Below are positions 4,797 to 13,937 of a stretch of 64,000 nt of DNA, piece after piece (position 1 is the first letter of the stretch; each line of letters opens with the position of its first letter). The translations under genes were made by a program, and so were the position numbers. The stretch covers positions 248,001-312,000 of the forward strand of contig NIVC01000571.1 of NCBI GenBank assembly GCA_002269645.1, written 5' to 3'. The notes below the pieces were generated by a model, which had not been told where the DNA came from, ran no database searches, and was given only the letters and a program-made list of their open reading frames with translations. The stretch comes from Macrostomum lignano. Lineage: Eukaryota.

Positions 4797-5005
4797 CTAC
4801 CATCTTGGTGCAACAGTGTTTTCTACATCTCGAACTGAAGCTCCCGAGCCGCTTGATTGATAGTGCACCTTCTTGAGGGCAGCCTGCACCACATTGCTCA
4901 TCAACATAGCCACGGCCAGCGGGCCGACACCGCCGGGAACGGGCGAGATGTACGATGTGCGATGCGCCACTTCTTGGAAGTAAACGTCACCGACTAGGCC
5001 TTGGC
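4797..5005 (-). CDS. folD: Exon 7: FolD C-terminus and stop (not in the ORF track)
   Basis: ctag|..[42 protein letters not shown]...PRW* (TAG 4799-4797). Confidence 0.88.
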
Positions 5006-11000: not shown

Positions 11001-13937
11001 TGATTAGTTGATGCCTACAAGCTACAGCTGGGACTTGGATGGGTCTAAGGAAAGCAAGCCGTAAGGCTAGTTCACATTGACTGCAGTTGGCAGTTGAAAA
11101 CGTGCAGTCGACAACCAGTTCTCAAGCGTACGTTGTGTACATCCGATGGGTCACTCTTCCTCAACCCTCTGACGGTCCTCTTATTTAAATAATCTCTCAA
11201 CCACCTCTCTCTCCGCCCTTGAGTAAAGTAAAGCATAACAGTATCGACAACGCTTTGCATGATTAACTAACTTGTCACGCCATCATATCAATAACTGCAT
11301 TGTGATAGCTGATTTTAGATGTAAGCGAATTAGGTTTAAATAGATTTTAGTAGATGTTAATCTAATGGGGATTAGGCTGTTTTATGGAAGGTGGGTGGTT
11401 GACTAGTTTTTCCCCCTTAGATCAGCGCCTGTAGGTATTGCATGGTGATGGTTGATTTTAGATGTAAGCGCATTGTGTATGAATAGATCTTAGTAGATGT
11501 TGATCTAAGGGGGAAAGGCTATTGTTTGACAATTTTGTGCTAAAACTCTCATCATGCCTACTACTTTCCTCTTTCTTTCTCTCCTTTCTCTTGACTCTTT
11601 CATTATTTCCCTTTCTCTCTCCTCCTTTCTCCCTCTCCCTCCCTTTTCCTTCCTCTCCGTCCCTCTCTCTCTCCCCTCTCTCCCCTCTCTCCCCTCTCCC
11701 CTCTCTCCCCTCTCTCCCCTCTCTCCCCTCTCTCCCCTCTATCCCCTCTCTCCCCTCTCTCCCTCTCTCCCCTCTCTCCCCTCTCTCCCCTCTATCCCCT
11801 CTCTCCCTCTCTCCCCTCTCTCCCCTCTCTCCCCTCTCTCCCTCTCTCCCCTCTCTCCCCTCTCTCCCCTCTCTCACCCTCTCTTACCCAAGGAATAAAG
11901 TGTCTTGCATCGTAAAAAGCGAAAGGCACAAACTATTTTTGCTCAGCCAGTTTTCGTACTTGGAACCACCTGGCTGTGACATGGACAGTCTAACAACTGG
12001 GTCAATTACCCCACGCCAAGTGCACCAATCACTCGGTCATCGTAGATGGAAGCAGTCCTATCTCCCATCACTTCACGCACCTGCTCGGGCCGCGGTGCCG
12101 CTTCAATGACATTGAGGTGGATGCCGTTGCTGAAGAAATCCCCGTTGCCCTGCAGGATGAGCACCTTGGCGTCGAGCTGCTTGGCCTCTCGGTAGGCCTC
12201 GGTGAGTCGACGGCACTGGTCGGTGCTCATGGCGCCGTTGTGGAAGTTGAAGTTCAGGATGCCGACGTGCTCTACCTGTTCGTACCAGATCTCTCTGAAG
12301 GTAGCGCGGTGGTCCGAGCTAAAGGGGCTGTACGGGACTTCCTGTGGGTTAATGGGTGCGGGTGGGGATGAGGCTGTTTAAGGGCGGAGGGGCGGAGGGC
12401 CGGAGGGACGGAGGGGCGGAGGGGCGGAGGGGCGGAGGGGCGGAGAGCGGAGGGCGGAGGGGCAGAGTTGCGGAGGGGCGGAGGGGCGGAGGGCGGAGGG
12501 GCGGAGGGGCGGAGGGCGGAGGGACGGAGTTGCAGAGGGGCAGAGTTGCGGAGGGGCGGAGGGGCGGAGGGCAGAGGGACGGAGGGGCGGAGGGCGGAGG
12601 GGCGGAGGGGCGGAGGGGTGGAGGGCGGAGGGGCAGAGTTGCGGAGGGGCGGAGGGCGGAGGGCGGAGGGGCAGAGTTGCGGAGGGGCGGAGGGGCGGAG
12701 GGGCGGAGGGGCGGAGGGCGGAGGGGCGGAGGGGCGGAGGGCGGAGGGACGGAGTTGCAGAGGGGCAGAGTTGCGGAGGGGCGGAGGGGCGGAGGGCAGA
12801 GGGACGGAGGGGCGGAGGGCGGAGGGGCGGAGGGGCGGAGGGCGGAGGGACGGAGTTGCAGAGGGGCAGAGTTGCGGAGGGGCGGAGGGGCGGAGGGCAG
12901 AGGGACGGAAGGGCGGAGGGCGGAGGAGCGGAGGAGCGGAGGAGCGGAGGGGAGGAGGGGCAGAGGAGCGAAGGGGCAGAGGGGCGGAGGAATGGTGTGG
13001 GTAGTAGAGCGAAGTCCAGAACTGACGGCATCCCTTCCTTGACGCCCAAGCAATCCCTCACCTCAACCCCAGCCGCGCTGATCTCCTCAGCTAGCACACT
13101 TGCCGTCGGCAGCTTAACACCACCCTCCACCCTAGCATGGCTGATCCACACCGCGCCATTCCCAGTGCCAACACACACCGCGCCGTCCCGCGTGGCCAGC
13201 AGTCGGCCCGGCTCTCCGCGCAACTCCTCGCCCTCCTCTCTATGCGCGCCAAACAGCCGCAACCGACGGCCCAGCAGCGATCCAAGCGCCCCCGGCGTGC
13301 TGTCCGAGCAGCGAACCTTCCGCAGCACCGTCTCCGTATCGTCTGTCCTCCAATCAACCGTCCGCTCACTCGCCTCCATTCTATCGCGCCACTCGCCCCT
13401 CGCCGTAGCCTTCTGCATCTCGCCTGGCCGCTTTGGCGTCCTTGCGCCAGATCGGAACTTCACCAAGAACTCATCCACGCATTCAACCGCGGCGTCGGTG
13501 ACCGGGCCGCGGTACAGGCTCGCCTTGCTACTGCCCTCCGGCACGTGGAAGTCCCGGTGGCTCCATACTGGCCCGCCGTCTAGCTCCTTGTCGGCCTGCA
13601 GGAGGGTGACACCCCACTCGGCTTCGCGTCGCAGCACCGCCCAGTCAAGGGATGACGGGCCACCGTCGGCGACCACCCCGGGATGCAGCACCAGACAGGG
13701 CTGGCTGGCGCAGACTGCCTGCGGGATTCGCCGTGTCAGGAAGGGACAGAGGACGAATTCCGGCTTCACCGCGTCCACATCTCGCTGGATGCTGTCCTCG
13801 CTGAGAGCCAGTCGGAACTGGATGCGGTGGCCGCGGTCCATGAGGTGCGTATGCAGCCGCTGGGTGAGTCCGTTGTAGGCGCTGCTCAACAGGAGAATGT
13901 TGTGTGGGCGTTGGGCCAGGGCGCCGATGAGTTTCAT
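4797..13937 (-). CDS. hypX-folD: Spliced HypX/HoxX-FolD(MTHFD1 D/C) fusion gene; join(13937..13062,12341..12081,9003..8518,8120..7702,7273..6978,5767..5552,5005..4797) = 2763 nt, 920 aa
   Basis: All six introns are GT-AG with matching phases (0,0,0,2,1,1) and the joined frame has no internal stop. Junctions restore family motifs: ELSHMRQ|[20 protein letters not shown]|TTSYLEV, VIG|[12 protein letters not shown]|QGLVGDV. Confidence 0.9.
5131..5535. repeat. (AGAC)n/(AGGC)n microsatellite in intron 6
   Basis: Tetranucleotide runs; source of the spurious PACL/RQAG ORFs. Confidence 0.95.
5552..5767 (-). CDS. folD: Exon 6: FolD NAD(P)-binding domain
   Basis: [13 protein letters not shown]...[29 protein letters not shown]. 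Confidence 0.92.
6978..7273 (-). CDS. folD: Exon 5: methylene-THF dehydrogenase/cyclohydrolase
   Basis: [18 protein letters not shown]...[10 protein letters not shown]...FISCAP...AVVIG. Confidence 0.92.
7702..8120 (-). CDS. hypX-folD: Exon 4: HypX C-terminus + linker + FolD N-terminus in one reading frame
   Basis: [18 protein letters not shown] (HypX tail) runs through a ~35-aa D/S-rich linker into [10 protein letters not shown]...[21 protein letters not shown] within ORF 7650..8117. Confidence 0.9.
8172..8495. repeat. (CTCA)n plus GGCGGAGG-type satellite in intron 3
   Basis: The same G-rich motif also fills intron 1 (12380-12990). Confidence 0.9.
8518..9003 (-). CDS. hypX: Exon 3: HypX crotonase domain core
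   Basis: gcag|[13 protein letters not shown]...[14 protein letters not shown]...[23 protein letters not shown]...ELSHMRQ|gtgagg. Confidence 0.92.
9138..10140. repeat. CT/CTAT-rich microsatellite blocks (9138-9578, 9826-10140) in intron 2
   Basis: Low-complexity pyrimidine tracts. Confidence 0.9.
9715..9751 (+). ncRNA. Minimal type-I hammerhead ribozyme
   Basis: AGCC-CTGACGA-A-GAAAT(TTA)ATTTC-GAAA-TATC-GGCT: stem I AGCC/GGCT, intact CUGANGA and GAAA cores, 5-bp stem II, palindromic loopless stem III, AUC triplet. Confidence 0.75.
11072..11260 (-). mobile_element. Possible decayed PIF/Harbinger transposase N-terminal remnant
   Basis: [23 protein letters not shown] resembles the W-x-R...R...LR..D(P) pattern of Harbinger transposases; weak. 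Confidence 0.3.
11640..11885. repeat. CT-rich microsatellite
   Basis: CTCTCTCCC-type repeats. Confidence 0.9.
12081..12341 (-). CDS. hypX: Exon 2: start of HypX enoyl-CoA hydratase/crotonase domain
   Basis: cacag|EVPYSP...EIWYEQ...[17 protein letters not shown]...[20 protein letters not shown]|gtgcgt. Confidence 0.92.
12380..12990. repeat. G-rich GGCGGAGG satellite in intron 1
   Basis: Low-complexity repeats between exon 1 and exon 2. Confidence 0.9.
13062..13937 (-). CDS. hypX: Exon 1: HypX N-terminal N10-formyl-THF formyltransferase domain
   Basis: [84 protein letters not shown]; donor GAG|gtgagg at 13062. Confidence 0.92.

Follow-up and report, generated by a model that had tools for sequence, protein, structure and literature searches.

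A transcribed HypX–FolD fusion gene in Macrostomum lignano and its candidate role as a folate-fed carbon monoxide synthase

Structure and host origin of the HypX–FolD locus

The window analysed here is a 64-kb stretch of the Macrostomum lignano genome. On its minus strand, from position 13937 to position 4797, a gene of seven exons encoding a protein of 920 aa was rebuilt from the raw sequence. All six introns start with GT and finish with AG, the intron phases (0, 0, 0, 2, 1 and 1) are consistent at every exon junction, and the only stop in the 2763-nt CDS is the terminal one. An upstream in-frame stop lies 29 codons 5' of the ATG. The original prediction had proposed this seven-exon model with the fusion point inside a single exon, and both were reproduced: exon 4 is free of stops and runs from the HypX tail through the linker into the start of FolD. 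The features of the gene are listed below.

13938..14003, minus strand: 5' transcribed leader; the partial CDS PAA80679.1 begins 22 codons 5' of the ATG, in frame
13062..13937, minus strand: exon 1, aa 1-292; ATG at 13937; HypX N-terminal formyltransferase-like domain; donor GTGAGG
13685-13683, 13667-13665 and 13580-13578, minus strand: catalytic codons of exon 1, for H85, D91 and D120, respectively
12081..12341, minus strand: exon 2, aa 293-379; acceptor CCACAG, donor GTGCGT, phase 0; the enoyl-CoA-hydratase-like (crotonase) domain of HypX starts here
8518..9003, minus strand: exon 3, aa 380-541; crotonase core; residues for decarbonylation are Y437 (8832-8830) and E446 (8805-8803)
7702..8120, minus strand: exon 4, aa 542-681, 419 nt; C-terminal helix of HypX, then the linker and the N-terminus of FolD
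7914..8021, minus strand: linker within exon 4, aa 575-610; acidic, Ser-rich, predicted disordered; M608 at 7922-7920
7769-7767 and 7757-7755, minus strand: FolD catalytic codons of exon 4, for Y659 and K663, respectively
6978..7273, minus strand: exon 5, aa 681-780; catalytic domain of FolD, including Q707 and, in the motif KDVDG, D733
5552..5767, minus strand: exon 6, aa 780-852; FolD dinucleotide-binding domain
4797..5005, minus strand: exon 7, aa 852-920; PVPGGVGP motif; TAG stop at 4799-4797; the acceptor at 5005 matches the deposited proteins

The 920-aa model was identical to residues 23-942 of the M. lignano protein PAA80679.1 in GenBank, and a second M. lignano protein, PAA58614.1, was 99.7% identical to it. 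Several near-identical paralogues are present in M. lignano on contigs of 63-533 kb; in one annotated paralogue, PAA55471.1, the frame is lost in the linker. For the GenBank CDS, RNA-seq transcripts had been divided at trans-splice and poly(A) sites mapped by experiment (PMC5730564), so that the fused mRNA has RNA support. Separate or prematurely terminated transcripts had been named beforehand as evidence that would speak against a fusion, and the annotated CDS is both transcript-derived and fused. No mention of the gene identifiers, including Mlig028590, Mlig011095 and PAA58614, was found in the literature searched, the supplements of PMC5730564 included.

Elsewhere the window has an animal character: it holds an ORF for a DEG/ENaC (ASC) channel and ankyrin repeats, together with reverse transcriptases and a Pao LTR retrotransposon. 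The six spliceosomal introns are rich in host-type microsatellites, and the GC3 of the gene (0.76) falls inside the range of the neighbouring host ORFs. The neighbours and the deposited proteins bear out the animal origin that had been proposed. A tblastn search with Nitrosomonas HypD and HypE as queries found no HypD/HypE-like sequence in the window, whose large ORFs belong to transposons or to animal genes, in agreement with the earlier statement that hydrogenase-maturation genes are absent from it. The locus is a genuine transcribed M. lignano gene for one polypeptide with three putative catalytic modules.

The two enzyme halves and the linker

Pfam domains were found in the order Formyl_trans_N (45-143), Formyl_trans_C (187-282), ECH_1 (328-558), THF_DHG_CYH (614-733) and THF_DHG_CYH_C (743-896). 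The score of Formyl_trans_N (26.1) was exactly at the cut-off, the Formyl_trans_C match was clear, and the E-values of ECH_1, THF_DHG_CYH and THF_DHG_CYH_C were 8.5e-14, 1.1e-28 and 3.7e-46, respectively. Worm residues 13-567 were collinear with residues 22-570 of the 582-residue chain of Aquifex HypX (6J0P; E=3.3e-138, 465 bits), and residues 608-896 matched the dehydrogenase/cyclohydrolase (D/C) domain of human MTHFD1 (E=3e-77). The E-values of these two matches, both to PDB chains, exclude chance similarity, and the HypX and FolD identities given in the original prediction are upheld. In the AF2 model both halves were confident (mean pLDDT 85).

The catalytic residues of HypX have been defined, in Aquifex numbering, as His74, Asp80, Asp109, Tyr416 and Glu426 (PMC6802093). 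In the alignment to Aquifex HypX all five were kept in the worm protein, as H85, D91, D120, Y437 and E446, the last two within the motif NPHY...GSEYW, and none of the homologues examined, whether fused or stand-alone, lacked them. Tyr437 and Glu446 were invariant in all fused lineages despite an overall identity of just 35-45%; the equivalents of this pair are needed for HypX function in Ralstonia (PMC6802093). For bacterial HypX, conversion of 10-formyl-THF via formyl-CoA to CO is established in vitro (reviewed in PMC12134894).

NCBIfam FolD models scored up to 234 bits on the worm protein, under their equivalog cut-offs. The catalytic residues Y52, K56, Q100 and D125 of human MTHFD1 correspond to worm Y659, K663, Q707 and D733, respectively. 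The worm FolD half scored 255 bits against animal MTHFD1 vs ~145 bits against bacterial fused FolD halves, and by these scores it is of the eukaryotic MTHFD1 type. No formyl-THF synthetase (FTHFS) domain (PF01268), the C-terminal domain of trifunctional C1-THF synthase (MTHFD1), was matched by Pfam in the worm protein, which ends only 24 residues past the D/C domain. Human R173 is replaced by N781, and H196-S197-K198 by D804-V805-D806. In human MTHFD1 (1A4I), Arg173 and Ser197 are ligands of the NADP 2'-phosphate, and these three to four residues suggest an altered cofactor specificity, possibly for NAD+.

The alignment to Aquifex HypX ends at residue 567, and the beginning of human MTHFD1 aligns at M608. 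The HypX tail, the linker and the FolD start share one open frame. The linker comprises ~36-40 residues with an AF2 pLDDT <50 at 575-610, and with such disorder any coupling of HypX and FolD would act by proximity and not through a rigid tunnel.

Fused HypX and FolD in other organisms

At least 149 full-length fused HypX and FolD proteins were retrieved from databases, from bacteria and several eukaryotic lineages. Carriers included soil Chloroflexota (Chloroflexota/Ktedonobacter MAGs), the bdelloid rotifers Adineta, Rotaria and Didymodactylos, the dinoflagellate Togula and the heterolobosean Pharyngomonas, and polyadenylated mRNAs of marine eukaryotes also encoded the fusion. In the Glomeromycota fungi Gigaspora and Cetraspora the halves were fused in reverse order, FolD before HypX. 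In a gammaproteobacterial MAG (locus L050), hypX and folD were separate and adjacent, 12 nt apart. The architecture is thus already in databases, uncharacterised, and is not unique to the worm. The uniqueness implied by the original prediction was not borne out, since GenBank/UniProt already contain the protein itself and its five-domain architecture recurs; by the measure set out with that prediction, these sequences remove the novelty of the architecture. Its suggestion that the fusion was undescribed held in one respect: a literature search found no publication describing HypX in eukaryotes or a HypX–FolD fusion.

The worm protein and five eukaryotic mRNA-derived proteins formed a clade (clade A) separate from the other fused proteins. 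The mRNA contigs of clade A, from runs DRR256864-74, ERR6349663 and Tara ERR1719402, were single, intron-less and polyadenylated, with the whole fused ORF; apart from an AATAAA signal, poly(A) and 3' ends rich in AT, their UTRs showed no features. Trees of each half were built by NJ, and because deep nodes were poorly supported in both, claims are limited to well-supported clades and the observed reversal of domain order, with no count of transfer events. HypX and FolD were apparently paired on more than one occasion, and such recurrence supports functional coupling.

In the bacterial fused clade the cyclohydrolase Lys is absent, and supply of formyl-THF by FolD may therefore not hold across the family. 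The adjoining gene in this clade is phosphoglycerate-dehydrogenase-like, and a conserved 132-aa ORF 5' of the bacterial fused genes matched nothing in Pfam or NCBIfam. The 10-kb surroundings of five bacterial fusions and of L050 contained no Pfam families of hyp or hydrogenase genes. In the tblastn test with HypD and HypE, however, hypD/E lay within 10 kb of just 14 out of 48 ordinary hypX loci, and the lack of hyp genes near bacterial fusions is therefore not a significant contrast.

Predicted function and relation to known systems

From the domains and conserved residues, the most likely function of the worm protein is the conversion of methylene-THF via 10-formyl-THF and formyl-CoA to CO, a route made chemically plausible by the intact catalytic residues of both halves. 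The MTHFD1-type D/C module would oxidise 5,10-methylene-THF to 5,10-methenyl-THF and hydrolyse the latter to 10-formyl-THF, probably using NAD+ over NADP+. This preference is proposed because the worm protein has lost the Arg and Ser that bind the 2'-phosphate and has an Asp on either side of the site. Use of NAD+ would favour formation of formyl-THF; that FolD catalysis is reversible counts against this reading. The HypX N-terminal domain (His85/Asp91/Asp120) would then move the formyl group onto the thiol of bound CoA, and the crotonase domain (Tyr437/Glu446) would split formyl-CoA into CO and CoA, with the disordered tether keeping the two enzymes close. We infer these steps, the cofactor preference, the flux direction and the physiological role. 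The product of use to the animal may be CO, or a net removal of one-carbon units with regeneration of THF. [NiFe]-hydrogenases are known only from bacteria and archaea (reviewed in PMC12134894), and either product must on that account serve another purpose in an animal. That the locus encodes one polypeptide releasing folate-derived CO for a non-hydrogenase purpose is, taken as a whole, a moderately probable explanation.

The protein might instead be an enzyme of one-carbon overflow or THF recycling that ends in formate or released formyl-CoA and makes no CO, which we consider unlikely. Such an enzyme would be analogous in function to PurU and to ALDH1L1, whose hydrolase domain is weakly but really similar to the worm N-terminal domain (E ~1e-11), and the crotonase fold is established to include CoA-thioester hydrolases. 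We know of no CO acceptor or user in these eukaryotes, nor of a CO-using partner in animals generally, and both the phosphoglycerate-dehydrogenase-like neighbour in the bacterial fused clade and the L050 locus, with its separate genes and no nearby hyp genes, fit general C1 metabolism. However, the Tyr/Glu pair is invariant among the divergent fused lineages, its equivalents are required in Ralstonia HypX (PMC6802093), and the protein scores 465 bits to HypX vs ~45 bits to any hydrolase or ALDH1L1. It is very unlikely that the fusion is only apparent, with separate HypX and FolD proteins arising by SL trans-splicing of a polycistronic precursor or by initiation at M608. Trans-splicing resolves ~7% of M. 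lignano transcriptional units (PMC5730564), M608 is the ancestral start position of MTHFD1, the paralogue PAA55471.1 is out of frame past the linker, and hypX and folD are adjacent but separate in the gammaproteobacterial MAG. Nevertheless, the TBONE pipeline, which cuts at mapped trans-splice sites, kept the CDS fused at at least two loci, one ORF is found in the five other clade-A mRNAs and >140 other proteins, and the frame stays open through the entire linker of exon 4, which would not persist without selection.

Maturation of a CO-ligated metal centre, in an unrecognised hydrogenase-like enzyme of the animal or of an associated microbe, is the sole role of HypX known from experiment, and here it is very unlikely. 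The restriction of [NiFe]-hydrogenases noted above and the absence of HypD/HypE signal from the window argue against it; the lack of hyp and hydrogenase families near the five bacterial fusions and L050 does so weakly, given how few ordinary hypX loci (14 of 48) have hypD/E close by. A contaminating bacterial sequence, a chimeric assembly or a functionless, decaying relic of horizontal transfer was considered too, HypX being otherwise bacterial and the bdelloid rotifers and other carriers being known for horizontal gene transfer. This explanation is effectively refuted by the six introns with host-type microsatellites, the animal genes and retrotransposons on the same contig and the near-identical paralogues on contigs of 63-533 kb; the intact ORF and catalytic residues, the transcript-based annotation (PMC5730564) and the MTHFD1-type FolD half stand against it as well.

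On the preferred reading, HypX is joined to an enzyme that would produce its substrate, in an animal expected to lack hydrogenase, by a transcript-annotated gene with an intact ORF. To our knowledge, HypX has so far been known only as an accessory factor of aerobic bacteria, in which it makes the CO ligand for [NiFe]-hydrogenases, and haem oxygenase is the sole accepted enzymatic source of CO in animals. Taken together, the worm gene and the recurrent eukaryotic fusions suggest that CO can be made by a second route, dependent on folate, or that one-carbon units are vented in a new way; the recurrence is 'Rosetta stone' evidence that FolD feeds HypX, and the pairing bears on how bacterial HypX is supplied with 10-formyl-THF. 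We tentatively suggest, with rather less confidence than for the worm protein, that HypX–FolD may form an unrecognised, hydrogenase-independent family of folate-fed CO synthases, assembled at least twice and retained across the carrier lineages. If so, it could provide the eukaryotic carriers with CO independently of haem oxygenase for signalling, respiratory control or another use. The lineages concerned are flatworms, bdelloid rotifers, arbuscular mycorrhizal fungi, dinoflagellates, heteroloboseans and soil Chloroflexota; two assemblies are counted from the two domain orders (HypX–FolD vs FolD–HypX) and from the MTHFD1-type vs bacterial-type FolD half. RNAi and transgenesis are established in M. 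lignano (PMC5730564), which makes the CO and one-carbon idea directly testable.

Compared with known systems, the worm HypX half is collinear over the full length with HypX/HoxX of aerobic H2-oxidising bacteria (Aquifex aeolicus 6J0P; Ralstonia eutropha/Cupriavidus necator), with the same formyltransferase-like and crotonase-like layout, His-Asp-Asp triad and Tyr/Glu pair. Unlike these, the worm gene is an animal nuclear gene with six introns and a C-terminal FolD module, it has no hydrogenase or hyp genes nearby, and its host phylum has no known [NiFe]-hydrogenase; after Asp91, clade A has GDGGP whereas bacterial HypX has GDRGP. Both FolD-half Pfam domains are common to the MTHFD1 D/C domain (human 1A4I/1DIA), bacterial FolD and the worm protein. 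The identity of the worm half to animal MTHFD1 D/C is 44-46%, with Y52, K56, Q100, D125 and PVPGGVGP kept. However, the worm D/C module lies at the C-terminus of HypX and not N-terminal to a synthetase, and the R173 and S197 positions of the human enzyme are N781 and V805 with flanking Asp. ALDH1L1 (10-formyl-THF dehydrogenase) is an animal enzyme with a formyltransferase-like domain homologous to the worm N-terminal domain, and it takes the formyl group off 10-formyl-THF via a phosphopantetheine thiol, regenerating THF. The similarity is limited to this domain (query 54-340, E 1e-8 to 1e-11) and does not extend to the carrier-protein-like middle domain of ALDH1L1, and no Aldedh domain was matched by Pfam in the worm protein; ALDH1L1 ends by turning the formyl group into CO2 with its aldehyde-dehydrogenase domain, whereas the crotonase-type module of the worm protein would be expected to release CO. 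The HypX–FolD fusions in databases have the five-domain content and the HypX catalytic residues in common with the worm protein. Among them, the bacterial fusions differ in a FolD half that is not MTHFD1-like and has no cyclohydrolase Lys, and the fungal fusions of Gigaspora and Cetraspora in a domain order opposite to that of the worm.

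The HypX-FolD gene and its transcripts

The HypX-FolD fusion of Macrostomum lignano is genuine: it is intact and expressed, and it recurs in evolution; its function is predicted. The original prediction of seven exons, GT-AG introns and a 920-aa ORF was reproduced at identical length when the gene was rebuilt from the raw minus-strand sequence, using stop-free segments and splice-site inspection. All six introns were GT...AG with compatible phases, and the CDS was 2763 nt (920 aa) with a single stop at its end.

Exons of the HypX-FolD gene (splice model)
13937-13062, minus strand, exon 1
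12341-12081, minus strand, exon 2
9003-8518, minus strand, exon 3
8120-7702, minus strand, exon 4 (aa 542-681)
7273-6978, minus strand, exon 5
5767-5552, minus strand, exon 6
5005-4797, minus strand, exon 7

The worm protein corresponds to residues 23-942 of PAA80679.1 (BOX15_Mlig011095g2) and is 99.7% identical to PAA58614.1 (Mlig028590g1), both from M. lignano and labelled 'hypothetical protein'; the database holds additional M. lignano paralogue entries. GenBank annotation of this assembly came solely from RNA-seq-derived transcripts, split where trans-splice and poly(A) sites had been mapped experimentally and then translated with TransDecoder (PMC5730564), so the fused CDS in GenBank attests the seven-exon mRNA at the RNA level.

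As predicted, the fusion point lay inside one exon: a single frame of exon 4 runs open from the last helix of HypX through the linker into the start of FolD. The first residues of human MTHFD1 aligned with M608, so the ancestral start position is kept within the fusion. Separate HypX and FolD proteins, made through trans-splicing or internal initiation, are quite improbable beside this frame and the fused CDS. Outside the gene, the window fits an animal genome, as judged from a DEG/ENaC channel ORF, a Pao-type LTR retrotransposon, reverse transcriptases and ankyrin repeats, and GC3 of the gene (0.76) lies in between the values of adjacent host ORFs; that the locus is an artefact or relic is scarcely credible.

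In the M. lignano paralogue P0121 (PAA55471.1), which lies outside the window, the frame is lost precisely within the linker: behind 'QGSVR' an alternative exon 4 frame is read, and the product is HypX alone (692 aa). Either an assembly indel or a genuine uncoupled variant would account for it. P0123 (888 aa) lacks the 32 residues with which exon 4 begins. The introns are mostly microsatellite and minisatellite arrays (window 12382-12990, 5132-5538, 9140-9579, 9827-10133, 11615-11884 and 8241-8489), including (GGGCGGAG)n (about 78 copies), (CAGG)n (about 102 copies), CT-rich arrays and (CGGAGGGG)n, and, when translated, they produce spurious ORFs on both strands that are long and of low complexity. 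Directly downstream of the 3' end is a 50-bp tandem repeat (window 4000-4161; 3.2 copies, 98% identical) whose unit includes CCTAACCCTAACCC, a telomere-like motif.

Other features of the window
41841-43484, minus strand, 547-aa intron-less ORF with a full-length amiloride-sensitive sodium channel (ASC/DEG-ENaC) domain (E=1e-42), very GC-rich (GC3 0.90)
28784-34120, plus strand, seemingly intact 1778-aa Pao/BEL-type LTR retrotransposon polyprotein (DUF1759, RVT_1, Peptidase_A17, integrase, DUF5641)
15178-16212, plus strand, further reverse-transcriptase ORF
35664-37571, minus strand, further reverse-transcriptase ORF
61641-63992, minus strand, 783-aa ORF at the window edge, zero Pfam matches
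49407-50870, minus strand, 487-aa ORF, sole match weak, to Orn/Lys/Arg decarboxylase C-terminal (E=6e-6)

Domains, active sites and predicted structure

Pfam domains occurred in the order Formyl_trans_N (at threshold), Formyl_trans_C, ECH_1, THF_DHG_CYH and THF_DHG_CYH_C. Among solved structures, Aquifex aeolicus HypX (6J0P) aligned end to end with worm residues 13-567 (E=3e-138) and the human MTHFD1 dehydrogenase/cyclohydrolase domain (1DIA/1A4I) with residues 608-896 (E=3e-77); the match of the FolD half to bacterial FolD was much poorer (5e-52).

Formyl transfer by HypX involves His74, Asp80 and Asp109, and formyl-CoA decarbonylation Tyr416 and Glu426 (Muraki et al., PMC6802093). These are H85, D91, D120, Y437 and E446 in the worm protein, respectively, and all five were invariant across 51/51 aligned fused and stand-alone HypX sequences. 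Human Y52, K56, Q100 and D125 correspond to Y659, K663, Q707 and D733, respectively, in the FolD half. The positions of R173 and S197, which we take to be the NADP 2'-phosphate ligands in human MTHFD1, are N781 and V805, with D804 and D806 flanking. From these residues we infer that the FolD half may have shifted toward NAD+, a preference that would favour the oxidative, formyl-THF-producing direction. An AlphaFold2 model from an alignment of 46 sequences had a mean pLDDT of 85, with both enzymes confident and residues 575-610 below 50, values that point to a flexible tether between the enzymes.

Occurrence, relationships and gene neighbourhoods

The original prediction treated the fusion as one not known to have been described. 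At the sequence level it is neither unique nor newly found, as 149 full-length fused sequences were retrieved overall, public and auto-named 'methenyltetrahydrofolate cyclohydrolase' or 'HypX/HoxX'. In the literature, a full-text search, with most subscription journals outside its coverage, found no publication that dealt with eukaryotic HypX or with HypX joined to FolD. Of the clusters from the initial homology search, about 60 held the full set of five Pfam domains. The best 150 matches from 1.84 billion 50%-identity representatives included about 11 fused clusters that were full-length and 5 that were fragmentary, and an Adineta-seeded search gave more than 110 fused clusters among the matches listed.

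Fused proteins by host
Ktedonobacter and Chloroflexi MAGs, from soil
Bdelloid rotifers: Adineta steineri, A. ricciae, A. vaga, Rotaria socialis, Rotaria sp., Didymodactylos
Heterolobosean: Pharyngomonas kirbyi
Dinoflagellate: Togula jolla
Arbuscular mycorrhizal fungi: Cetraspora pellucida, Gigaspora rosea

In C. pellucida, G. rosea and the metagenomic protein P0283, FolD precedes HypX, an order that cannot be derived from the HypX-FolD form by simple descent. Neighbour-joining trees were built separately for the two halves and bootstrapped, and the two trees concurred on several groups. Clade A comprised M. lignano and the eukaryotic proteins P0002, P0003, P0004, P0005 and P0036; support for M. 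lignano with P0002-P0005 was 95-100 in the HypX-half tree, and the node with M. lignano was weaker in the FolD-half tree (39-49). Its partners came from intron-less contigs of RNA-seq and Tara Oceans metatranscriptomes, in which long AT-rich 3' UTRs were accompanied by an AATAAA signal and the beginning of a poly(A) tract, and are thus eukaryotic mRNAs with the entire fused ORF. Clade B, the bacterial (Chloroflexota) fused proteins, was tight (bootstrap 100 in both trees), rotifers and Glomeromycota formed one clade each (100 each), and other protist fused sequences grouped only loosely. Deep nodes were poorly supported, so only the well-supported clades and the reversed domain order are interpreted.

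Against animal MTHFD1 the worm FolD half reached 255 bits (46% identity); its scores fell to about 145 bits (35%) with clade-B FolD halves, which cluster with bacterial FolD, and to 126-140 bits with rotifer FolD halves. Judging from the inverted domain order and the existence of two FolD types, the pairing seems to have arisen or been rebuilt more than once, and this repetition is good comparative evidence for functional coupling.

Bdelloids have two fused paralogue families, the A. steineri/Rotaria type (P0064/P0078) and the A. ricciae/A. vaga type (P0482/P0484), with a mutual identity of only about 37%. Many eukaryotic members carry N-terminal extensions of 60-120 residues, absent from the worm protein, that could be targeting peptides. 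P0322 has a response-regulator receiver domain joined to the HypX N-terminus, and several HypX proteins (P0384, P0395, P0401 and P0416) have C-terminal extensions of 300-500 residues without a Pfam match.

A GTDB scan (one genome per species, clade-B query P0016) retained the best-matching 80 HypX loci, and folD adjoined hypX in only 3 of them: two were Chloroflexota genes of the fused kind, and the third belonged to a gammaproteobacterial MAG (MFD06229.bin.1.238). In the latter (L050, 10001-12632), hypX (577 aa) and folD are separate, with 12 nt from stop to ATG and no hyp genes within 10 kb; it looks like an operon-level counterpart of the fusion. Around the pair lie DJ-1/AraC regulators, CopA/CopB-like genes and a catalase-peroxidase. 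In five clade-B contexts, Pfam families of hydrogenases or hyp genes were absent within 10 kb. In the control (tblastn, Nitrosomonas HypD and HypE queries), HypD/HypE lay near only 14/48 ordinary hypX loci, so the missing hyp genes around fused genes are suggestive and not a significant contrast.

Four Chloroflexota fused loci (L001, L002, L018 and L019) shared the order 2-hydroxyacid dehydrogenase, 132-aa ORF, HypX-FolD. The dehydrogenase is phosphoglycerate-dehydrogenase-like (385 bits, under the curated cut-off of 454), and no family match was found for the 132-aa ORF. In a Chloroflexia MAG (L022, 3699-5402), a HypX that shares 88% identity with the fused clade runs into a stop codon and has no FolD module behind it, which suggests that the fusion partner was gained or lost recently. 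Clade-B FolD halves have YSKAIL or YSQAIL in place of Y-x3-K and so are without the cyclohydrolase lysine; identical chemistry across the family is thus not to be assumed.

Proposed function

The methylene-THF to CO route of the original prediction is the best-supported mechanism, each step being predicted for the worm protein. The FolD half would convert methylene-THF to 10-formyl-THF, and the HypX half would transfer the formyl group to bound CoA and decarbonylate formyl-CoA to CO. Both HypX reactions have been demonstrated for the bacterial enzyme (PMC12134894). It is unlikely that the route stops at formate or formyl-CoA and forms no CO; the decarbonylation residues are among the five invariant ones.

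To our knowledge, [NiFe]-hydrogenases have been described from bacteria and archaea only, which leaves the animal role to other candidates. Service to a cryptic CO-ligated metallocentre is highly improbable. In the CO-forming route, CO may act as a signal or respiratory modulator; alternatively, the protein may be a one-carbon and THF-recycling valve, a candidate role in which it is likened to ALDH1L1.
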